A program made the translations under genes and the position numbers. This document shows positions 35,605 to 64,000 of a DNA stretch of 64,000 nt, in pieces. Position 1 is the stretch's first letter; each line of letters opens with the position of its first letter. The DNA is from Paraphysomonas bandaiensis. Taxonomy: Eukaryota > Protista > Chrysophyceae. The stretch lies in the NCBI GenBank assembly GCA_965644295.1, contig CBFFRP010000358.1, positions 170,064 to 234,063 on the forward strand, read 5' to 3'. Below the pieces are notes generated by a model. It was not told the origin of the DNA, made no database searches, and saw nothing but the letters and a program-made list of their open reading frames with translations.

Positions 35605-36051
35605 AAGTACAGCTGATGAGGTTTTGGTGGTTGCGTATCCGTCAGTTATGTCTCGTGATGTTGTGAAGATTCAATGTACAGCTGATGAGGTTTTTGATGG
35701 TTGCGTATCTGTCAGTTATGTCTTGTGATGTAAGGATTCAATCTGCAGCGTATCCGTCAGTTATGTCTCGTGATATGAAGAGTCTATCTACAGCTTTGAA
35801 TTGAGAGGGAGTGTTGAAATTTGCTGTTTGAGCAATTAAAAGCTGTAATTCTAAGGTGTTGGAATTATGACCGTTAGTCGAAGAATACAGTAGTGATGAG
35901 CTGTATTATGAGAAGTGATATCATGACGATGTAAGATCGTACTAGAAATGAGTGGTAGTAGAGATAACGTGATATATTGCTTATTATATTTATTATAATC
36001 TTCTCTTATCTTAACTTGATTAATGAGTGAATACACGTCCAGTTAACTTAA
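35605..36051 (+). mobile_element. Copia 3' UTR with short tandem duplications, PPT and start of an LTR (35812), cut off by the TIR element
   Basis: Repeated GCGTATC(C/T)GTCAGTTATGTCT x3; GGTGGTTGCGTATCCG as at ~2546; PPT GAGAGGGAG then TGTTGAAATTTGCTGTTTGAGCAATTAAAAGCTG, which matches LTR ends at 40727(-) and 47601(-) and a decayed copy at ~39292. Confidence 0.75.
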
Positions 36052-36277
36052 AGTCGAGGTAATACCAAAACCTGGGTTTTGATGTAAAACCTGGTGAAAT
36101 TTTTGATGATGGTTGGAAAAGGGTATAACTATGCACAATAAGTAACTATGAAGATAATAACAGTATGAAAAGTATTATTTATAATATTTTTTACTAATTT
36201 CTTCCATATTACTTCAGTTTTACAGCAATAAAAGTCACCGACTACACATATATATTACATACAGTTCACAAGTATGA

Positions 36278-36640
36278 ACTATAACCATCTCACTATACAC
36301 CACTTTACCATCTCACTAAACATCACTATACCATCTCAGAATACACCCACATACCATCTCACTATACACCCATATACCATCTCACACCCATATACCATCT
36401 CACTATACACCCATACCATATTACTATGCATCACTATACCATCCCACTATATTATACCACTATACCATCTACTGTATACCACTATACCACCTAACTATAC
36501 ATCACTACACTATCTCACTATACACCCATATACCATCTCACACCCATATACCATCTCACTATACACCCATACCATATTACTATGCATCACTATACCATCC
36601 CACTATATTATACCACTATACCATCACTATCACTATATTA
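36278..36640. repeat. C/A/T-only minisatellite (CACTATACCATCT / CACTATACACCCATATACCATCT units)
   Basis: Almost G-free degenerate repeats with a ~165-bp higher-order duplication; second array at ~41422-41808. Confidence 0.9.
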
Positions 36641-36641
36641 T

Positions 36642-37190
36642 ATTCGGACGCCACATATCCAGCTCACTGCTCGAACATCAGTTCCACGTTCTCGAAAAAT
36701 CCGTAACCTCTATCCTCCTTCCCCTATATGGTGGAGGGCTCCGCATGCTTCGAAACAGAGGTCTCAGACATCACAACACAGACACGGCATCAGTAACACC
36801 GATTACGACCCCACCACACTCACAGCAACGCCCGTCGCAGGATACTCACCCGACACCAAAAATACTCCAACTACTCCTAGCGACATCCACCCCAAGAATT
36901 CTATCCGCTGCAAGAGTCCGAACCCGACAGAGACAAGCACCACCACTCCGGAAACAACTCCTCCTTACTTGTGGTCGAAATCCCAACTCGACAACCAGCA
37001 CCATCTACACCACCGACTTACACTCTCATATACATCTAGCCCCAACCATCCCCCGTAAAACTCACGATACAGGCCCGGCAGACACACTGCCCAAAGGCAG
37101 ACCCCCCGATTAACCTCACTGCAAGGGACGGTTGAACCATGGTGCTCGCAGCGATGCACAAGCAGTCCCGAGACGGTAGCTGATACCACT
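36642..37190 (+). mobile_element. 3' end fragment of a non-LTR (LINE-like) retrotransposon
   Basis: Continues the CCHC-bearing reading frame seen at 41810-42181 (shared 36642-36744 = 42079-42181); ORF ends KGRPPD* at 37113, followed by a short structured 3' UTR. Confidence 0.65.
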
Positions 37191-37201
37191 CTCAGACGAC
37201 A

Positions 37202-37820
37202 TGGCGACATATCCAACGACGACCCGGAGGCGGAGGAAGAGATACCACGAAAGTGCACGAGCAGGGTAAGTAATACTGTTCATAAAGATGGTGACGGGGC
37301 CGTATGTCGTATATATGCGGTATTGTTCTGATTATTGTTGTGCGTTGTTACTATACACTGCACTAACTGTGTATATATGATGGTGTAGGAGAAGTGCAAC
37401 GGGAAGAAGAATGTTGTCAACATTCGTGGCGACATATCCAACGACGACCCGGAGGCGGAGGAAGAGATACCACGAAAGCGCACGAGCAGGGTAAGTAATA
37501 CTGTTCATAAAGATGGTGACGGGGTCGTATGTCGTATATATGCGGTATTGTTCTGATTATTGTTGTGCGTTGTTACTATACACTGCACTAACTGTGTATA
37601 TATGATGGTGTAGGAGAAGTGCAACGGGAAGAAGAATGTTGTCAACATTCGTGGCGACATATCCAACGACGACCCGGAGGCGGAGGTAGAGTTACCACGA
37701 AAGCGCACGAGCAGGGTAAGTAATACTGTTCATAAAGATGGTGACGGGGTCGTATGTCGTATATATGCGGTATTGTTCTGATTATTGTTGTGCGTTGTTA
37801 CTATACACTGTACTAACTGC
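37202..37820 (+). repeat. 225-bp tandem repeat (~2.7 units); each unit is a 102-nt exon-like segment plus a 123-nt GT-AG intron-like segment
   Basis: TAG|GAGAAG..AGCAGG|GTAAGT (exon 37389-37490), intron 37491-37613 with CACTAAC branch point; same array at 42182-42770. Confidence 0.85.
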
Positions 37821-39420: not shown

Positions 39421-40399
39421 GATATGAATTAGTTTTTAGTGAAACGGAAATAATATATTGAATGAAAAGATCTTGTCTATCTAAGATCATTAAATCTTGA
39501 TTGGTAGAAGTGACAATGACTCTATCATAAACCACAATGAGTAATGAGAGAGAAATATCAAAATTTTAATCAATGAGAGAGTCGTGTATATTACAAGTTC
39601 AGTTTATTACTTTTAGTGCAAAAAGTGGCGATACTAAATTAGTAAATCGAATAACTACTATTACTACTACTCACTCTCGCTTAAAGGTAAGGGCATGCTC
39701 TGATACGTTGATTCTGCGGAAGAGCTATTAGCCAGTGACTTAGTAGCCAAAATAATCGAAAGTTTTATGGGTGAAATACAGTATTAATTATTAATTGGTG
39801 GAACTCAGCGAACAATTTACAAACTTCAAAATTTGAGAGTTTTGATGTGTGGAGATATTGACCGTCTAAACGGTATACTCTAAGAATAATCGAATTAGAA
39901 GAACTCCCTACCGATGGAGTAAAAATTTACACTACAAATGGCACAGGAATCACGATTGGATTTAAAGCAACTGTACACTAATCGCTATTTAAAATATAAC
40001 CCTTCTTACAATATGAGATGCCTCAACAAAGTTGGACTCGCACCTTTTTTTGGTGTTCTGGGGGATAAGTACCGGGTATACTTCTCCGGGAAACTGACGT
40101 GAGCCGCATATATAGTCAGCAAATATAGTTCTGTCCACTCATAGCCAAAATGCTTGTGTGTGGTACAAAGGACACTAAGAAGTGTCACTTGTGTAGACAT
40201 CTTTCGACTGAACCCACCTCCGGGGTATTGGGCTGCTTGCTGTAGTCAAGCATCCGGGAATGGGCCCACCTCAAGGGCATCCTGGATATTGTGCTACCTG
40301 CTGAAGTCGAGTTCGGCTAGTTCACCTTAAGGACAGAGAGTGAAAGTAGTTTCACCTTGGTACTTGCGGTGACGCACACGAAGCATTCGTAGCGCTAAA

Positions 40400-40727
40400 T
40401 TGTAGGATATCAGAGGTAAGCAATATATATATATGCTAAAGTAGTTCTTACTCTTAAACGCCTATTGCTAATAATCAGACATTCACTACTTACAATGAGA
40501 TGGTAACTGCTAGAAAATGACATATCTGAACAATAATGCTTCTACTCTATGCTTAGATTATAACTTAGAAACATATAGTAACAGATAATCAATATCACTT
40601 GTCATTCACTGTCAATCGCCAAATTCTCGTAATACAGTTCATCACTTCTGTATTCTTCCATTACCAGTTATGATTCAAGTACTGTTGAACTATAGCTTTT
40701 AATTGCTCTCAACTAGCAAACTCAACA
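40400..40727 (-). mobile_element. Copia-derived fragment: LTR start at 40727 and family 3'-region motif at ~40452
   Basis: Reverse complement TGTTGAGTTTGCTAGTTGAGAGCAATTAAAAGCTATAGTTC; GTAGGATATCAGAG and CTCTTAAACGCCTATTGCTAATAAT shared with 35080-35130. Confidence 0.55.
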
Positions 40728-40871: not shown

Positions 40872-41190
40872 TACTACTAGTGGCGGGCAACCGTCTCGGG
40901 ACTGCTTGTGCATCGCTGCGAGCACCATGGTGCAACCGTCCCTTGTATTGAGGTTAGTCGGGGGGGGGTCTACCTTTGGGCAATGTGTCTGGCTGGCCTG
41001 TGCCATGGGTTATGTGAGGGGTGGATGAGGCGAGATGTATATGAGAGTGTAAGTCGGTGGTGGAGATGGTGCTGGTTGTTGAGGTGGGGTTTCGGCCACA
41101 AGTAAGGAGGAGTTGTTTCCGGAGTGGTTGCGCTTGCCTCTGTCGGGTCTGGACTCTTGCAGAGAGTGTAGTTCTTGGGGTGGATGTCGC
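40872..41190 (-). mobile_element. Inverted, diverged copy of the LINE-like 3' end
   Basis: Reverse complement aligns with 36880-37176 (..KQLLLTCGRNP..KGRPPPD* plus 3' UTR); ends CCAC-TAGTAGTA, a possible (TAG)n tail. Confidence 0.75.
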
Positions 41191-41195
41191 CTGGA

Positions 41196-43172
41196 AGTCG
41201 AGGTAATACCAAAACCTGGGTTTTGATGTAAAACCTGGTGAAATTTTTGGTGATGGTCGGAAAAGGGTATAACTATGCACAATAAGTAACTATGAAGTTA
41301 ATAACAGTGTGAAGAGTATTATTTATAATATTTTTTACTAATTTCTTCCATATTACTTCAGTTTTACAGCAATAAAAGTCACCGACTACACATATATATT
41401 ACATACAGTTCACAAGTATGAACTATAACCATCTCACTAAACACCACTATACCATCTCAGAATACACCCACATACCATCTCACTATACACCCATATACCA
41501 TCTCACTATACACCCATACCATATTACTATGCATCACTATACCATCCCACTATATTATACCACTATACCATCTACTGTATGCCACTATACCACCTAACTA
41601 TACATCACTACACTATCTCACTATACACCCATATACCATCTCACACCCATATACCATCTCACTATACACCCATACCATATTACTATGCATCACTATACCA
41701 TCCCACTATATTATACCACTATACCATCTACTGTATACCACTATACCACCTAACTATACATCACTACACTATCTCACTATACACCCATATACCATTTCAC
41801 TATACACCTACGTATGGGACAAATCATACGCGATGGGCAGAAACCAAGCCAAAGGAAAAACCGGGCCTGATCACATAACAACGGCCTCAGCATGCGCAGA
41901 CTGTGCACTCCCAATCGACAACATGGCACACATGCTTCTCACCTGCACACACCTGCTCCCCCATCCCTGGTTTCACACCGCCATAATCAAACTAGCAAAA
42001 GCCGCATGGAATCCACACACACCCCAGGCTGAGCGCTACTGGACCGGCCACATTACTGCCACACAATTGACCGACGCATTCGGACGCCACATATCCAGCT
42101 CACTGCTCGAACATCAGTTCCACGTTCTCGAAAAATCCGTAACCTCTATCCTCCTTCCCCTATATGGTGGAGGGCTCCGCACGGAGGAAGAGATACCACG
42201 AAAGTGCACGAGCAGGGTAAGTAATACTGTTCATAAAGATGGTGACGGGGTCGTATGTCGTATATATGCGGTATTGTTCTGATTATTGTTGTGCGTTGTT
42301 ACTATACACTGCACTAACTGTGTATATATGATGGTGTAGGAGAAGTGCAACGGGAAGAAGAATGTTGTCAACATTCGTGGCGACATATCCAACGACGACC
42401 CGGAGGCGGAGGAAGAGATACCACGAAAGCGCACGAGCAGGGTAAGTAATACTGTTCATAAAGATGGTGACGGGGTCGTATGTCGTATATATGCGGTATT
42501 GTTCTGATTATTGTTGTGCGTTGTTACTATACACTGCACTAACTGTGTATATATGATGGTGTAGGAGAAGTGCAACGGGAAGAAGAATGTTGTCAACATT
42601 CGTGGCGACATATCCAACGACGACCCGGAGGCGGAGGTAGAGTTACCACGAAAGCGCACGAGCAGGGTAAGTAATACTGTTCATAAAGATGGTGACGGGG
42701 TCGTATGTCGTATATATGCGGTATTGTTCTGATTATTGTTGTGCGTTGTTACTATACACTGTACTAACTGCTTATGATCCTTCACCTGCTTATGATCCTC
42801 CACCTACTAGCAATGTGCCCCCAGCGGCTGTTGCCGCGTCGTTTCCGAGCATAGGTACTAATACTACTGTAAGTAGTAGTGGTAAAGATAGCTATATGCG
42901 TATGCAATGTATCCGAAATCAGGCTATTCGGTTGGAGCGTTTGCAGTCTCAAGCGAAGCAGATGTAGCTATATGAGAATATGATATTACAAAACACAAGT
43001 AATAATAGCAGGGCCAACTTGTAACGCAATAAATACTGCTAATAACAACTATACTTGCGACTTTTTCTTTACCTTTAACCTCTCAGATACAAATTACAGT
43101 AAAATAATAACTCAATACTTAGATATGAAACCTGGTGAAATTGCTTTACCAGGTTTTGGTATTACCTCGACT
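41196..43172 (+). mobile_element. Composite non-autonomous TIR element, copy B (both 24-bp TIRs intact; Kolobok-like AG..CT ends)
   Basis: AGTCGAGGTAATACCAAAACCTGG (41196-41219) and its exact reverse complement (43149-43172), followed by TTTA; subterminal AAACCTGGTGAAAT repeats at both ends. Confidence 0.85.
41810..42181 (+). mobile_element. LINE ORF2 C-terminal fragment with CCHC zinc knuckle
   Basis: CADCALPIDNMAHMLLTC = Cx2Cx8Hx4C, typical of the post-RT zinc knuckle of non-LTR retrotransposon ORF2 proteins. Confidence 0.7.
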
Positions 43173-56585: not shown

Positions 56586-58010
56586 TATCGAAGTAACTAT
56601 AAAATGTTATTCTGATTTACAATATGGCTATGCGACACTTTAACACCGCATTGGTAACACTAGAGATATCAATGTAGTTAAATACCCTACAGTACAATAA
56701 TATGATTTACGTGCTACAATGAAGAGTAGAATCAAGTTTGACGGTTTAAGTCTAATCATGGCGTTTCTGTGATAATAGTGTTGGTGAACTACGTTATGTA
56801 CATTATATAAGTAGTTAGTAGTAGTTATTTTGTCTACAAAATTGTAACGACTACGGGTGATTGAGCCTCGCTATCATGACTAACATTGCTGGTCTTATCA
56901 TCCCTGTCCATGTGCACAGGTGATGTGGGTAGGATAGTCTTCTCACAACACTCTTCACTTAACTTCCTCTTCTTACTCTTTACTTCGCTACTTCTTAACT
57001 TTCAACTCAACTACGATATCAACTTTCACTATTATAATATCTAAAACTCCATATCCTTCTACCTATATCCCCATAGTTAATTCTAGAAGTGGTTTCCCAG
57101 CCATAAATAGCTAGTTTTCTACTTCCAGAAATAATCATATAGAAATCCCTTAACACCCTGCTAGATCTTTCTCTGCCCTACGATGGCAAATACCGTTCAA
57201 CACAAAGTTTCTCCTTATTAACCAGCTTTAAGCTCAATGTCCCTATTAAGGGTGTGGATGAGTCATGTCAGTGTGCCTAGGGCCTCTTCTCCCTCTCTTC
57301 GGCCACATTTTGCTGATCACCTCGTCTCCGACAAATCTCTTGTTTTACCACGTTGTACACGTTCCAAGCCTCACTGCCTGGCTTTGCGACTTCCACCCAA
57401 CCTAACGGCTTCGGCTAAACCACGTGCCTGCACTAATGCAGCGCTTACCGCATTCATATGCCATCACATCAGTAGACATCATAGTCTCACCTATCGAATT
57501 CTACGGTTACAACCACTCAAAACGTGGCTCGTGCGAGCAGGTCCACGCAAAAGATCCTCTGGTGCTCTCCATATGGTCACAGAATACTCTCGAACCCTCA
57601 CAACTGAGCTACAGGGCTGCCTCCTGATGTCCACACAAAACAACCCAACATGGTTTATCTGTGGTCTATGCATCCAGCAGGTTACCCCCTCATTCTGTTC
57701 ACCTATCACTCCCTCAGCCCATTCCTCTTATTGGACAGACACTGTATTCCGCATACGGTATATTCGGCTACTGTACTACAGTGCCCTACAGGATGTATAC
57801 CACACAAAAACGGTGCTAGCATGCGGAACACCACGTAGCCCCGGACCCCAACAATACCCTACCAACCCACACCCACTCAATCTTGCTGGTTATGAGTATA
57901 TCACCTATGCAAGGCCCCAAAGTTCACGCTTAAGTCTCTTGCGAAACAACACTCGGTTCACATACAGATATACACCAACACTCTTTAGAAGCAACTTCGA
58001 CACAATTTCA

Positions 58011-59781
58011 ATGAAACGTGAAACAAATTCCAACACTTCCAGAACCTTCACCCCGAAGTTTGTTCTTCCCCCCTCCTATCAACCAACCAACATTGATGCG
58101 CAGATCAATAATGCTATCAGAGAACAGAAGAAAGCCAAAGCTGACACTCCCCAGCTACAGCTCCCATCGGTACGCACCTTTCTGGGATGGGAAAATGACC
58201 TACCTGTGGGAGAGTACAAAACACTCGTCCTTACAAACATAAAAGCTGCTGATGATGCCACCTTCCTGGGGATAACACACTACCTTATCCATGAGTTGGG
58301 GTTTCCCATTCAACCCCCTACCCCCCAAGACATCGCTACTTTCAGGGCAGCCAAGGATGCACGAACGTGTTCAGACTTACCTGCTCCCACAGCGAGTAGG
58401 GTAGTCCGAGCGTTCAACCTAGGCAGACCTGGGTACGAAGTCCGACAGGGCATGGGAGCGAATGTTACCGCTGACTCATGTATGTACTCCTCCCCTCTAT
58501 GCTTTGACCTCCATGTAGAAACGGGCACATCAGTCGATGACAAAGGCCTCCTTCGGACCGAACGCCGACATGTTCAGATATCACTTTTCCGAACGCCACG
58601 AGAACTCTTCGTGGGTCGCACCAAGGATGAGCCCTCGCTGATACCAGTGGCGGCTATATATGGGCTACATGCAAACTCAGCGCACACCAGACCTGCACAT
58701 GCCTTTAGGTTACGAAACACGCTGGATATGCTTCTCCGAACGGGAGGTTTCCCCACGCCACCTCTATACGAAGTATTCTGGACTCTAACACACTATAAAA
58801 AGGCAAGACTCGAGCCACTGACAAAACATATAGGTTCTATCAGATTCTATTACTCCACGATCCCATTCACGATCAGGATCTAAGAGCTAAATTCTATAAA
58901 GCACTCTTCAATAATGAAATAGGAGGACATGTCGAAATCAACCTCGGCTCACTCTGTGTTGTAGAATGGTCAGCACTGAAACACCCACGCAAAAGCAGTC
59001 CAACTGGACACCGTCTCAAGAACTCTTCCACATCGCTGTCTGCTCTGAAACACTCCTATCTCCCATCCAAGTCTGGCAAGCCTGTGAGGCCATAGGTATC
59101 CCATCCACGGACATAGAGGACATCATTTGGACCGCCCGCAACCCACTCACAAGCGGGCGCAAAGAAAAAGAACGCTTAGTTGAACAAACCTACATTTACC
59201 TTGACGACAGGAATACCAAGATCAAACTCTGCTGGGAAATCTCACGCACAGGTATCGTGCCTTTACTGCGCAAAGCTCTGGGTGACGAAACTCTAAGGCT
59301 CCTCTATCACACCATAGCAGTCCCCCCTGGCCTCCCTACTCAGCGGTTTCTATACGGCCTCCATGAGGCCCCAGACACAGCAACAAACGCCCCTCCCATA
59401 ATACCGCCTCCAACGTCCCTTCAACCCTTCGGCCCAACTGTTGCTCCACAAATGCAGACCGATACACCGCGATCGTACACTCCCAAACGACAGCGACAGA
59501 TGGACACATCCCCATCAACAGAGCCAGCACCAGCTCCCACCTGCCCAGAGCTCTGCGAAATAGCTCTACACATCGCTTCAGATCTTGTACCTCTGTCAAA
59601 AATCCATGCCATCCTCGCGCAAATGGAAAACGCGGTTGCAGCTCTCTATGAGATCGATGCTGGGGCGACTCTCACGGTACTTGATTACTATAAAAACAAG
59701 GTAGATCACAGTATCCCAGAAAGGTCCTCAGAAGAACACTCTAGGGTGGACTCGGACATCTTTGGCTCCGACTCCAACTGA
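58011..59781 (+). pseudogene. ORF1-like protein of the element, broken by two frameshifts near 58860-58990 (frame open upstream to 57237)
   Basis: ORFs 57237-58883 and 58966-59781 are bridged by a third-frame stretch IHDQDLRAKFYKALFNNEIGGHVEINLGSLCVVEW; no recognisable domain; Pro-rich linker then helical C-terminus. Confidence 0.5.
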
Positions 59782-59928
59782 CGCCTACTGGACTGGGACA
59801 CAACGAACATCAAACGTACACTCATAGAAGTGTCCGCAGCTGCTCACACGTGGTTATCCCCCAGTCCACACTTACATATCCATAGTTGGCCCTCACCTGA
59901 CACAACGACCTTCGCCCGTAGCAACCAC

Positions 59929-62900
59929 ATGCGTCCACCACGTAAACCGCCAGACAAACAGTCGAGATCCACCAGCGTACATCCCACGAAAAGGCACCAA
60001 GGACCGCACTATTCCTGTGATAATAGTGGTGATGGACCACGAAAACGGCCGGCCTCGACACAACGTAAGCGAAACAACCTCCGGCGGCTCAGTCGCAAAC
60101 GAACTCTGCAACAATTTCGTGAAGGAACAATCCAGTCCCTCCCTCCACACATACAACGCCAACAGACACGAAACAAGCTCCGCATCCGTGCCCACAACAA
60201 GCAAGCATGGCGAGAGCATTTACAACACCTGGCACAACAGTGTGTAGACACACACAACATCGTGACCACTCCTATACCTGACACAGCACCCACAGCTGTT
60301 ACAGCACCCCCCCGTCCAGAAGACTCCACACATACTATTTGCCTCCCTCCGCCCACAGTGGAGGACGAACAAGAGAGAACAATCACTGACACAAGTGTAC
60401 TGCCTCAACTATTTGTGCCGCACCCTCTGCCAGCTGCCTTCACGGACCCCGGACTGCAGAATTGGTCCTTCTACTCGCCCAGCGGTCTGTTAGCCATTGC
60501 CATACACGAAGAGGTGGTTCACAGTGTCATGTCCATGCTACAATCGAGGCACGCTTTAGAACGCATAGAACAGCACCTCAGATGTTCGCTTGAGGAGGGG
60601 AAAATGCTGGTTGCACGTCACTACACACACACAGAATACAACAACACACCAATGGAGGGCTTCTGCGGACTAGCTGCTATTGCCGCAATATACCACAAAC
60701 AACCGGAGGAGGACCACTACCCGTATTTAAATCCCGATGATCCAGCCTCGAAAGCAAAACTGCTCCAAGTCATTCAGACAAGCAGGACGGTACTTAGTAC
60801 CTACACGCTCGCTGAAGCCAAGATGCTTAACTTTGCATGCATCCGGAAGAAGCTCCGACAGCAGCTAACAACGTACAACAAAGCACTACGCCGCAAACGA
60901 CCAACTGCTGTCGGAATACCCCCAGAGCAATGGGGCTACACAGACATCATAGCCCTCCTGGCAGAAACCCTGAGTATACGAATTCGTATCTGGCAAGATT
61001 CACCAGTGGACCTTGGCCACAACTGGGCGTACTGGTCTACCCACCATTCCTCCTTCCTTCCACAAACTCAATTCCTTCCATCCTATGATGTGTTTTGCTC
61101 CAACGACCACTTCTTCCTGGACACCAAATACCCGGTGGAGTTGGAACTACACGCGCTACTCGAGAGAATTCCTGACCTCGTCATCATGCGTCTCCAAAAT
61201 GTGTTGCAATATCATTCCAAGGGAATGCAAGGAGTCCATCGTGCCAGGTCCATCAACCATCCCTCCCACGCCCTTCAGGGGAAGGAATTCTCTTCCGATA
61301 ACAGCGGTGACGGACCCAGCAAATCCACCCACACATTACCCTTACCCACTAAGGATGCCACCACACCGTATGCAACTCTATTTGACTATTTCCCAGTCAA
61401 ACGGAGGCCACCTACCACCAACCCTACTCAACTGAACACCATGCGAACTCCAGCATTAGCCCCAGACGGCCCATCCTCACACTCCACTACCACTCTTGAC
61501 ATCAGGCCGGATGCACTGCCCAAGGATATTGCCACACACCCCCGACACTACACAGAGGGCTGGGGTCACACGCCCTTTCACTCCGATCTGCTGAACAACT
61601 GGGTTAGATATGATAAAACCCAAACCATTGCTGCCTCCCCACAGGGAAACCTTTTAAAAGAAATATATGCACACATGCTATCCCCTGCCTGTTCAGACAT
61701 ATGGGAAGGATTCATAGCCAAGGCTTCCAGGACGGACAACTATGATCTCATGATATCATTCACGCTACCAGAGCACAAATTGGACACCACGCACAGCGCC
61801 CTACTAGTTGCCCAGCATCTCGCGAATGGCAACAAACCCTGGGCAGACTCCACTCATGTTGTATCTAGGCATGTGCGGACCCTTTGCCTGACAAAGGGTA
61901 TTCCCTCAACAGCCACTGTTAGTCTCCGTAAGACACTCATGCAATATGAATCCTCGACTCCACACACAGGACTACATCTAGACACGGAGGACTTCCAACT
62001 GCTACTCGATCTTCTCTCCATACCATACAGACTATGGGACGCTGTTCAACCGCACCTGGCGCCTGGTTGGGCACAGCTGTCACCATTCTCCAGACAGGCA
62101 CTAACAGTGCACGCTTCTACCAACAATGTGGTAACCCATGACATCATACGCAGCCAGCATGGGTTTCACATACTCAATGCAACAAATATCCTCACCTGCA
62201 TCATGCACGCTCTAACACGGACTCAGGAGCGGCTATCCTGTTTTCTACAACACCAGACCTCCAGACAGAGCACCAACATCCTCTGGACTTCTGAGCCGTC
62301 AACTGTACCACCTATGCTACATGAGCACAGAGAGCAACAGGAACAGAGGGAAGTAATTGCAGTCTCCTTGTCACCGAGAGCTCGACGTCAACTACGACAG
62401 ATGAACCCCACGGACCGTCGACAACTCAGGCTCCATATGTGCGACATGAGCAGAGTCTATCGCCTCACCCTCAGACCCTCAGCCCTTCGCACACAACAAC
62501 ATATCCCTAGTGATGGGTACTGCGCATACAGCACACTCTATCATCTGCACATTCTTGCTTCAAGCAGGCGACACACTCGCTCCTGTCTGAAATTAGACCT
62601 CAAACAACGCAAGGACCGTCACACGCTAGCATCTTTCATAAATACATTAGGCACCCAAGCGTTCGACACAATGCAACGGGAGTGCATGGCCCATCACACA
62701 CTTCAGCCACTACGACATAAGTTAGATCACGCACAGGCCGCACATTTAATACCTACCAAAACAACATACACTACGGAGGACGACATAACTCACTGGCTCT
62801 CAGTGCGAGAGGTCCACCTTTTAGCCTCTACTATCAACCCCTGCACGACGTGGGCGCAAAATGGTAATTACCTCAGCATTGTAGGCATCCCTACAGACAA

Positions 62901-63558
62901 AGTAGCTTATAACATCGCATGGAAGGTGGACGAACTTAGGGACGCTATTCGTGATAACTACTACCATGTCATACTACAAGATGCTCACTACTTCCTCTTA
63001 GACCCTGCCGGTCTTTCTACTGCCCTAGACAACGCCCTACTATCTCTTGAAAACACCTTGGCCACCAGTATACTCTCAACGGCTGACCCCATCGCTCCAC
63101 CTACACTTCCCGCGGACTCAATCACGAACAACAATAGGACATCAAAGATGACCAGCACCAGAACAACCTCATCAAGCAGCACCAAGTTAGCACGAACAAA
63201 TCGACAGATTCTGCAGGCTTCAACCCCTGGAGCACTACCATCGCACAAGAAGATGCAGTTGAAACACGCCCAAACTGCGTTGACAAGTCGATGCCAGCCA
63301 ACCCGGAAAGCCAAAAAGGTCGTAAATTACGATGAAAGTGACCAACCAACGAACCTTCACAACTCACACCCAACCACGACCACACGAACGATCAGACCAA
63401 CTCCAGCACTAGATACCACCGGCTGGGACAGGACTGGTCAAGAAAGTTCTACATTGCGTACGCCGATAACACTGCCAAAGGACTATCCCTTTATGCGAAG
63501 AACACATTCCCAGCAGACGTCATCATTGCTGAGTACAAAGGCAAACGCTATCCACTAA
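59929..63558 (+). CDS. ORF2 polyprotein with three OTU-like cysteine protease repeats and two DNSGDGP motifs
   Basis: OTU1 TPMEGFCGLAAI..WGYTDIIALLAETLSIRIRIWQ..SNDHFFL; degenerate OTU2 ASPQGNLL..LDTEDFQLLLDLLSIPYRLWD..QHGFHIL; OTU3 IPSDGYCAYSTL..WLSVREVHLLA..QDAHYFLL. Confidence 0.7.
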   Translation: MRPPRKPPDKQSRSTSVHPTKRHQGPHYSCDNSGDGPRKRPASTQRKRNNLRRLSRKRTLQQFREGTIQSLPPHIQRQQTRNKLRIRAHNKQAWREHLQHLAQQCVDTHNIVTTPIPDTAPTAVTAPPRPEDSTHTICLPPPTVEDEQERTITDTSVLPQLFVPHPLPAAFTDPGLQNWSFYSPSGLLAIAIHEEVVHSVMSMLQSRHALERIEQHLRCSLEEGKMLVARHYTHTEYNNTPMEGFCGLAAIAAIYHKQPEEDHYPYLNPDDPASKAKLLQVIQTSRTVLSTYTLAEAKMLNFACIRKKLRQQLTTYNKALRRKRPTAVGIPPEQWGYTDIIALLAETLSIRIRIWQDSPVDLGHNWAYWSTHHSSFLPQTQFLPSYDVFCSNDHFFLDTKYPVELELHALLERIPDLVIMRLQNVLQYHSKGMQGVHRARSINHPSHALQGKEFSSDNSGDGPSKSTHTLPLPTKDATTPYATLFDYFPVKRRPPTTNPTQLNTMRTPALAPDGPSSHSTTTLDIRPDALPKDIATHPRHYTEGWGHTPFHSDLLNNWVRYDKTQTIAASPQGNLLKEIYAHMLSPACSDIWEGFIAKASRTDNYDLMISFTLPEHKLDTTHSALLVAQHLANGNKPWADSTHVVSRHVRTLCLTKGIPSTATVSLRKTLMQYESSTPHTGLHLDTEDFQLLLDLLSIPYRLWDAVQPHLAPGWAQLSPFSRQALTVHASTNNVVTHDIIRSQHGFHILNATNILTCIMHALTRTQERLSCFLQHQTSRQSTNILWTSEPSTVPPMLHEHREQQEQREVIAVSLSPRARRQLRQMNPTDRRQLRLHMCDMSRVYRLTLRPSALRTQQHIPSDGYCAYSTLYHLHILASSRRHTRSCLKLDLKQRKDRHTLASFINTLGTQAFDTMQRECMAHHTLQPLRHKLDHAQAAHLIPTKTTYTTEDDITHWLSVREVHLLASTINPCTTWAQNGNYLSIVGIPTDKVAYNIAWKVDELRDAIRDNYYHVILQDAHYFLLDPAGLSTALDNALLSLENTLATSILSTADPIAPPTLPADSITNNNRTSKMTSTRTTSSSSTKLARTNRQILQASTPGALPSHKKMQLKHAQTALTSRCQPTRKAKKVVNYDESDQPTNLHNSHPTTTTRTIRPTPALDTTGWDRTGQESSTLRTPITLPKDYPFMRRTHSQQTSSLLSTKANAIH

Positions 63559-63869
63559 CAAAGCTGAGTCAGTCTACAAGGCGTTCTGATTACATAGTTC
63601 AAGACAGTACTGGTACCTTCGCAATAGATGGCCTTGACCAAGTCCGACAATGTGTAACATGCGAAGCTGGGTATATTAATGACCCCCTAGCCACAAACAT
63701 GGCTAATGTCAAGTTTGTCACGAAAAATAAACGCCTCTATATCCGTACAATACGTTCCATTGCTAAGGATGAAGAACTTCTCATCAACTACGGGCATCAT
63801 TATTGGTGTGATCAACGCTGGCCACTTGAGATATTAACCAGCCAGGGCTGGCATACGACAGCGACATAG
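63342..63869 (+). CDS. SET-domain lysine methyltransferase, in the -1 frame relative to ORF2 (not in the ORF track)
   Basis: Manual translation of frame 3: KGLSLYAKNTFPADVIIAEYKG..SDYIV..AIDG..AGYINDP..ANVKFV..LYIRTIRSIAKDEELLINYGHHYW, matching SET motifs GxGLFA..I.EY.G, ARFINH, N, EELxxxYG..YW. Confidence 0.85.
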   Translation, partial: PTNEPSQLTPNHDHTNDQTNSSTRYHRLGQDWSRKFYIAYADNTAKGLSLYAKNTFPADVIIAEYKGKRYPLTKLSQSTRRSDYIVQDSTGTFAIDGLDQVRQCVTCEAGYINDPLATNMANVKFVTKNKRLYIRTIRSIAKDEELLINYGHHYWCDQRWPLEILTSQGWHTTAT

Positions 63870-64000
63870 GCGGTGCCAATATCGCAGTATGGGACAGACT
63901 CCTCTGCAGACAAGAGTGGAACTCCCACAGAGACCTCCAGCAGCATCCCCAAGGATCCCTCGGGAGCAGCCATGGACCTGACTCTCCACATGGAACACAA

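Follow-up and report, generated by a model that had tools for sequence, protein, structure and literature searches.

Several families of long interspersed nuclear elements (LINEs; Ingi/L1Tc, CR1, L2, Crack and Rex1) carry 2A-like peptides in the protein of their second open reading frame (ORF2p). These peptides lie 40–80 amino acids (aa) from the ORF2 N-terminus (PMC3708506). Canonical 2A-like peptides are also found in LINEs that encode deubiquitinase (DUB) domains, which are of the Josephin type in Haematococcus and of the OTU type in Symbiodinium, and DUB domains and a separation signal are on record together in LINE ORF2 proteins (PMC13405545). A Leu-rich or otherwise hydrophobic helical segment at about positions -19 to -10 is required in 2A (PMC13405545). 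Saturation mutagenesis of P2A and F2A identified D12, E14, N16, NPGP and L6/L7 as intolerant, with almost no change tolerated at D12, E14 and N16, and the functional single-deviation clusters termed ‘class X’ all retain NPGP (10.64898/2026.09.24.754024). Here we analyze a LINE in a 64,000-nucleotide (nt) stretch of a Paraphysomonas bandaiensis contig (CBFFRP010000358.1, positions 170,064 to 234,063; hereafter the window) whose ORF2 contains two copies of a 20-aa motif ending in DNSGDGP. An initial annotation of the window, made from its letters, proposed that this motif is a new class of ribosome-skipping (StopGo) peptide or, alternatively, a self-cleavage site for OTU proteases of the element.

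The motif resembles the 2A-like peptides of LINEs in its length of about 20 aa, its Gly-Pro end and the presence of DUB-like modules in the same protein. It differs from them in lacking NPGP, the D(V/I)Ex core and the Leu-rich helix, in occurring twice and in having a conserved Lys at +2. A second comparison is with the polyprotein sites of arterivirus PLP2 and tymovirus PRO, which like the motif are repeated short linker sites beside a Cys/His module in a multi-enzyme polyprotein, rich in Gly and small residues, with one site just behind the protease module. Those sites span 4–5 residues, whereas the present motif reads S-G-D-G-P, is conserved over about 22 aa and lies in an ORF without any GG; in the present case, protease activity and fold are putative. 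The bacterial arrest peptide SecM (...GIRAGP) also has spaced conserved residues over 17–20 aa, and at its end Gly occupies the ribosomal P site and Pro the A site. SecM has no sequence similarity to the motif and serves a regulatory role in bacteria, whereas arrest at the motif is hypothetical. The PUB-interacting motif of OTULIN is likewise short and conserved, and it precedes an OTU-type module in disordered chain; the present motif shows no sequence similarity to it, extends over more residues and was probably duplicated along with its module.

The repeated DNSGDGP motif

Copy 1 (HPTKRHQGPHYSCDNSGDGP) lies at 59980–60039 on the + strand, at aa 18–37 from the first ATG of its open frame. 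Copy 2 (HPSHALQGKEFSSDNSGDGP) lies at 61258–61317 (+) and is kept in two relatives from environmental sequence data, L001/P0005 and L002/P0002. Both copies reported by the initial annotation are exact and share one reading frame, within the single open frame 59782–63555. They are identical at 12 of 20 residues, including the 7-mer DNSGDGP, and have Tyr or Phe at one further position. The two copies form the top ungapped 20-mer pair in the protein, with a BLOSUM62 score of 68 against 36.2 ± 3.3 (maximum 46) in 200 shuffles. From composition, DNSGDGP is expected 6e-7 times in the motif ORF, and a six-frame translation of the whole 64 kb contains no other GDGP. A chance origin of the repeat is excluded. 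With 2.8% Gly, no GG and a single G-[GAS], the ORF is rich in Gly and small residues at the two motifs and nowhere else. A DNA look-alike of copy 1 at 56764–56793, in AT-rich, stop-filled, non-coding sequence, was judged a chance match.

The initial annotation also held that the flanks of the two copies are unrelated and that conservation is at the level of the peptide, and our analysis agrees on both points. The flanks show no relationship at the BLAST level. The codons of DNSGDGP differ at the third position in four of seven cases between the copies, all four differences being synonymous; in the core, codon differences are synonymous only, both between the copies and relative to L001. This relative, from a Tara Oceans metagenome, is the sole diverged one that spans site 2 (site 1 is seen in the window copy only). 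Its site 2 reads HSSYTHQGKGISSDNSGDGPQK and keeps SSDNSGDGP exactly, with 5 synonymous and 0 non-synonymous changes over nine codons relative to copy 2. In the flanks of the same site, 49 codons differ non-synonymously and 23 synonymously, 18 are unchanged, and identity is about 45–46%. The initial annotation counted a lack of conservation in related elements against its proposal, and this relative shows the opposite.

Over three independent versions of the motif, the invariant residues are H-20, Q-14, G-13, S-9, DNSGDGP and the Lys at +2. The Ser codons belong to the same family in all versions, TCN at -9 and AGY at -5, and the keeping of these separate families fits descent by duplication under continuous selection. 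Selection acts on the peptide, and we read the motif as an exposed signal, about 22 aa long, that is under such selection. The DNSGDGP repeat is real and is new as a motif. The EF-hand, the serine-protease motif GDSGGP, caspase and taspase sites and the beta-TrCP degron were considered and rejected because their positions do not match.

An RNA-level explanation is ruled out by the synonymous codon differences and by the lack of any RNA structure common to both sites; RNA folds at and after the two sites have z = 0.8, 0.1, 1.6 and -2.6. A second conserved island, DYFPVK(R/W)R, begins in the linker 22 aa past motif 2. It reads DYFPVKRR in the window (61384–61407, +), and in the comparison with L001 DYFPVK is identical with synonymous codon changes. 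The hairpin at 61375–61407 (141-nt fold, z = -2.6) overlaps this island and is only partly kept in L001.

The polyprotein that carries the motif

The motif-bearing open frame (59782–63555, +) has its first ATG at 59929 and in intact relatives continues in frame to a SET-APE-RT region (APE, apurinic/apyrimidinic endonuclease; RT, reverse transcriptase). The placement of copy 1 about 35 aa into ORF2 in the initial annotation is correct when counted from this ATG, but the frame is already open from 59782. The window stops short of the APE domain, and we read APE and RT from the extension in L005, which is 97% identical to window positions 62648–64000. There the frame continues for 1,072 aa, a stretch that includes a SET domain followed by Exo_endo_phos (APE) and RVT_1. 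The same three domains are found in L031, which is 72% identical to the window copy; the SET-APE-RT part spans L005:678-3893 and L031:319-3192. The RT of L005 matches LINE-1 ORF2p structures (E = 2e-7). The finding of APE and RT in so similar a copy bears out the earlier description of the element as a non-LTR (long terminal repeat) retrotransposon. Judged by its domains, it is an APE-type LINE and, because the frame is continuous to SET-APE-RT in the relatives, its ORF2 is a polyprotein of >2,300 aa. The order is leader, motif 1, basic helices, module 1, motif 2, a probably dead module 2, an OTU-like module 3, SET, APE and RT.

The ORF has three modules with Cys/His motifs or remnants of them. 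Module 1 (60454–61254, +), called OTU1 in the initial annotation, has a candidate catalytic Cys at 60664–60666 (EGFCGL) and His at 61108–61110 (NDHFF), 148 aa apart. Module 2 (61588–62274, +) has Leu at the Cys position (61651–61653, QGNLL) and an altered His motif (QHGFHIL, within 62152–62175), and judging from these residues it is probably catalytically dead. Module 3 (62437–63114, +), which we call OTU-like, has its Cys at 62521–62523 (DGYCAY) and its His at 62986–62988 (DAHYF), 155 aa apart; both residues are kept in L003, L004 and P0001, relatives that are 41–72% identical. In phmmer, an insert of module 3 at about 62860–62925 (NGNYLSIVGIPTDKVAYNIAWK) aligns to all seven blades of the propeller lectin 6gxs (summed E = 5e-7); this match is probably spurious and due to a hairpin-like repeat.

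Module 1 matches the first module of L004 by BLASTP (E = 1e-7), and that L004 module occupies the position of module 2. On this similarity, modules 1 and 2 are paralogous. The two motif copies precede them by about 138 and 90 aa, respectively. Since the modules are paralogous, a [motif-linker-module] unit was probably duplicated in tandem, with the motif as its best-conserved part.

Both motif copies are predicted to be coil or unstructured, with a predicted local distance difference test score (pLDDT) below 50 in a 520-aa model whose overall pLDDT of 46 permits coarse features only. The end of copy 1 lies 5 aa ahead of two long, very basic predicted helices, and the start of copy 2 lies 10 aa past the last predicted helix of module 1. 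The position of the motif at module boundaries, as described earlier, therefore agrees with the predicted unstructured chain at both copies, in a model of low quality. The basic stretch PRKRP..RKR..RKR (60037–60264, +) directly follows motif 1 and resembles a nuclear localization signal; its two long helices (pLDDT 70–91) are the sole confidently modelled part of the 520-aa model. It could be a nucleic-acid-binding or nuclear-import segment.

The SET domain (63480–63794, +; frame 3 in the window copy; Pfam PF00856, E = 5e-10) forms the N-terminal end of the SET-APE-RT part. This domain, of lysine methyltransferase type, immediately precedes APE-RT in the fusion protein of this LINE family; no LINE described so far is known to us to carry one. 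A one-base indel at 63425–63437 (+) relative to L005 and L031 shifts the frame and yields an apparent ORF end at 63558, and further indels relative to the same two copies lie near 63850 (about 63846–63870). Because of these indels, ORF2 seems to stop at 63558 and to be followed by a separate ORF in the -1 frame; from the alignments, this end is damage in the window copy and not the true end. L005 has an in-frame TAA of its own at 675–677, and all sampled copies are slightly damaged.

Possible roles of the motif

We rank a protease junction first among the possible roles, followed by a docking motif and then by a peptide that acts on the ribosome. The favoured reading, to which we give a probability of roughly 0.3, is that the motif copies are polyprotein junctions cut by the element's own Cys/His (OTU-like) protease. 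The polyprotein would be cut at or beside the small-residue stretch S-G-D-G-P in each copy, after translation, and the likeliest agent would be one of the element's own Cys/His (OTU-like) proteases. Cutting would free the leader, and a piece with the basic helices and module 1, from an enzyme comprising module 2, module 3, SET, APE and RT. This reading is supported by the repeat, the selection on the peptide, the linker position, the polyprotein architecture, the intact Cys/His motifs and the Gly content of the motifs in an otherwise Gly-poor ORF, as well as by the recorded LINE ORF2 proteins that combine DUB domains with a separation signal (PMC13405545). The polyprotein is long, joins several enzymes in one frame and therefore provides a substrate for processing. 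We infer the cutting of the chain, the enzyme responsible and the bond that is cut.

Several observations weigh against this reading. The first concern the site itself. In known OTU-type sites, for which arterivirus PLP2 and tymovirus PRO provide examples, Leu and a basic residue are followed by a terminal GG or G-[AS]. The motif offers only the G-D bond of S-G-D or the G-P bond of D-G-P, and proteases cut poorly before Pro. Conservation extends about 20 aa upstream, beyond the usual protease subsites. Neither the window nor L003/L004 has a motif copy in the interval from module 2 to module 3 or in that from module 3 to SET. The evidence comes from three independent motif sequences, and no more were found in all searched data.

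The weak OTU identity of the modules also counts against it. In favour of such an identity, modules 1 and 3 have their Cys and His in OTU order and spacing. Pfam searches with the ORFs and with single modules gave no OTU match, nor did phmmer searches of PDB or profile searches, and hhalign found no similarity between module 3 and modules 1 or 2. An AlphaFold model of module 3 has a pLDDT of 55.7 and a predicted template modelling (TM) score of 0.49. About 40 of its 50 top Foldseek matches are OTU deubiquitinases, none of them significant; the best has E = 0.12 and a TM score of about 0.2, obtained with a low-pLDDT model. Foldseek gave meaningless output for the 520-aa model, and the model of module 1 is too poor to use. 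We consider the label ‘OTU-like’ reasonable but weak for module 3, given this model, and tentative for modules 1 and 2, where it reflects motif resemblance. The initial annotation described copy 2 as lying between OTU1 and the next module; the boundary position stands, and the OTU identity is tentative only.

The next possibility, which we hold tentatively, is that the chain is not cut and that the motif is a docking motif at the head of each catalytic or pseudo-catalytic module, recruiting a host protein or binding the neighbouring Cys/His module. A sharply bounded conserved island in unstructured chain, rich in Ser, Asp, Asn and Gly, is consistent with such a role, as is the second island, DYFPVK, nearby. 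The motif is kept ahead of module 2 despite the lost Cys, which fits binding or scaffolding that does not depend on catalysis, and conservation continues past the Pro to the Lys at +2 in all three versions. In cellular OTU enzymes such a motif can stand N-terminal to the domain, as the PUB-interacting motif does in OTULIN. Yet no described motif matched the peptide, for which a full-text literature search returned nothing relevant, no partner can be named, and the motif, with its invariant residues spread over about 22 aa, is longer than one expects for simple docking.

We regard as unlikely a third role, that of a new class of nascent peptide that acts on the ribosome from the exit tunnel and slows or blocks formation of the peptide bond between the final Gly, then in the P site, and the Pro, then in the A site, giving either a StopGo-like break or a programmed pause. 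In shape the motif is like a 2A: its length is in the 18–23 aa range, it ends in Gly-Pro, and it occupies an N-terminal position in ORF2 and an inter-domain position. Its conservation falls almost entirely upstream of the Pro, in residues spaced over the length of the ribosomal tunnel. The position matches that of 2A-like peptides in LINEs (PMC3708506), which occur beside Josephin and OTU domains (PMC13405545). In yeast, D-x-x tripeptides with Pro or Gly (D-[PG]-[PG]), and G-P with Gly in the P site, are slow, eIF5A-dependent pause motifs (PMC5499558). According to a study cited in PMC13405545, an OTU deubiquitinase rescued product loss from 2A-linked stalling, and such rescue would give the neighbouring modules a role. 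A more specific form of this proposal, in which DNSGDGP and about 13 upstream residues form an NPGP-independent class of nascent peptide, paired with the LINE's own OTU-like DUBs that protect the product from ribosome quality control, is less likely still.

The sequence of the motif argues against an action on the ribosome. As the initial annotation noted, it lacks the canonical DxExNPGP and ends in G-D-G-P. [NH]PGP is absent from every frame of the window, L001-L005 and L031, and neither a D(V/I)Ex nor a G-D-x-E core is found anywhere in the window or its relatives. The motif residues aligned to (G/H)D(V/I)Ex read S-[CS]-D-N-S. The positions that are indispensable in 2A are therefore absent, and even the class X clusters keep NPGP (10.64898/2026.09.24.754024). 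The upstream segment has 0–1 Leu, with Pro or Gly at -19, -13 and -12 and no Leu-rich helix, in conflict with the stall-helix model (PMC13405545). In addition, the Lys at +2 is conserved past the supposed break. The proposal of a ribosome-skipping class thus finds no backing here: nothing shows skipping, and NPGP, D12/E14/N16 and the upstream leucines are all missing. We reject on sequence grounds that the motif is a 2A, since these three defining features fail. That it works like a 2A is possible at a low prior; the prior is low because we know of no StopGo without NPGP, all StopGo peptides known to us depending on it.

That the motif is a functionless relic, the slowest-decaying remnant of an internal duplication, is very improbable: the paralogy of modules 1 and 2 shows that a segment was duplicated, but the rest of the duplicated unit is down to about 20–25% identity while the core is identical at 7/7 residues with synonymous changes only, and the orthologous site in L001 has 0 non-synonymous against 5 synonymous changes in 9 codons between flanks about 46% identical.

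Upstream frames, relatives and significance

Two ORFs precede the motif-bearing frame. ORF1 of the element (57237–58883, +) encodes 548 aa of no recognisable family, and its 5' part is 81% identical to L002:1-549. A 271-aa ORF (58966–59781, +; coding to 59778) is in frame with the motif ORF and ends in a single TGA at 59779–59781 (context AAC TGA CGC CTA), the sole stop between the two. This TGA, which like site 1 is seen in the window copy only, represents either stop-codon readthrough, which would be programmed, or a nonsense mutation in the window copy. Across the element (56900–64000) the strands are asymmetric, with a GC skew of about -0.25 and an AT skew of about +0.2; the + strand is C- and A-rich, and the protein is rich in Thr, Pro, His and Gln and poor in Gly. 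The rest of the window holds kinesin, Mon2/Sec7, HhH and hydrolase genes at high density. The window was taken to be from a marine eukaryote and not from human; Rfam, a tRNA scan and a search for the dinoflagellate spliced leader yielded nothing that points to the host.

The 15 billion public proteins searched include almost nothing related to the element. A word-based homology search with the whole ORF gave no match, and an exhaustive HMMER search of 1.84 billion representatives gave five short fragments only. The contigs of the relatives come from marine metagenomes and metatranscriptomes (Tara Oceans PRJEB4352, JGI 3300018983 and 3300017004 and three ENA assemblies). A profile of the motif-2 region recovered P0005 again and nothing else, exact look-ups of nine window ORFs found zero on record, and an ORF search of IMG/VR and phage records gave no match. 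The pattern QG-x3-S-x-DNSGDG hit 25 loci in JGI metagenomes, all of them chance matches in unrelated or non-coding contexts; the pattern included the Gln-Gly and missed L002, and the JGI collection therefore lacks that metatranscriptome. With a terminal Pro codon (CC) added, the pattern had 0 matches in IMG/VR. No further instance of the motif was found in JGI metagenomes, IMG/VR or 5.8 billion proteins.

The tails of L001 (707–876) and L002 (1098–1311) share a sequence of 70–170 nt that is also present three times in the window, at 40344–40415, 40902–40937 (-) and 37130–37165. From these recurring tails, L001 and L002 seem to be derivatives, either composite or internally deleted, in which the end of module 1 and motif 2 have survived. 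A large dispersed repeat lies at 36050–37400 and 40887–42776 and includes tandem arrays with a unit of roughly 150 nt (36278–36625 and about 41400–41810). It is about 74% similar to a tandem array ahead of the LINE fragment in L003 (L003:1-990).

We class the motif as a putative signal for separation or targeting, placed toward the N-terminus of a LINE ORF2 polyprotein. If it were a true StopGo peptide, it would be a second, unrelated solution to the same task, would alter how recoding signals are searched for and could be put to use in co-expression as a new tool. Even as a protease site or docking motif it would be informative; to our knowledge, no processing or targeting signal has so far been defined in a LINE with DUB-like modules. 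The element is itself unusual in fusing three Cys/His modules and a SET domain to APE-RT, in a LINE family that is almost unsampled. The motif bears on why algal and protist retrotransposons carry deubiquitinase-like modules.

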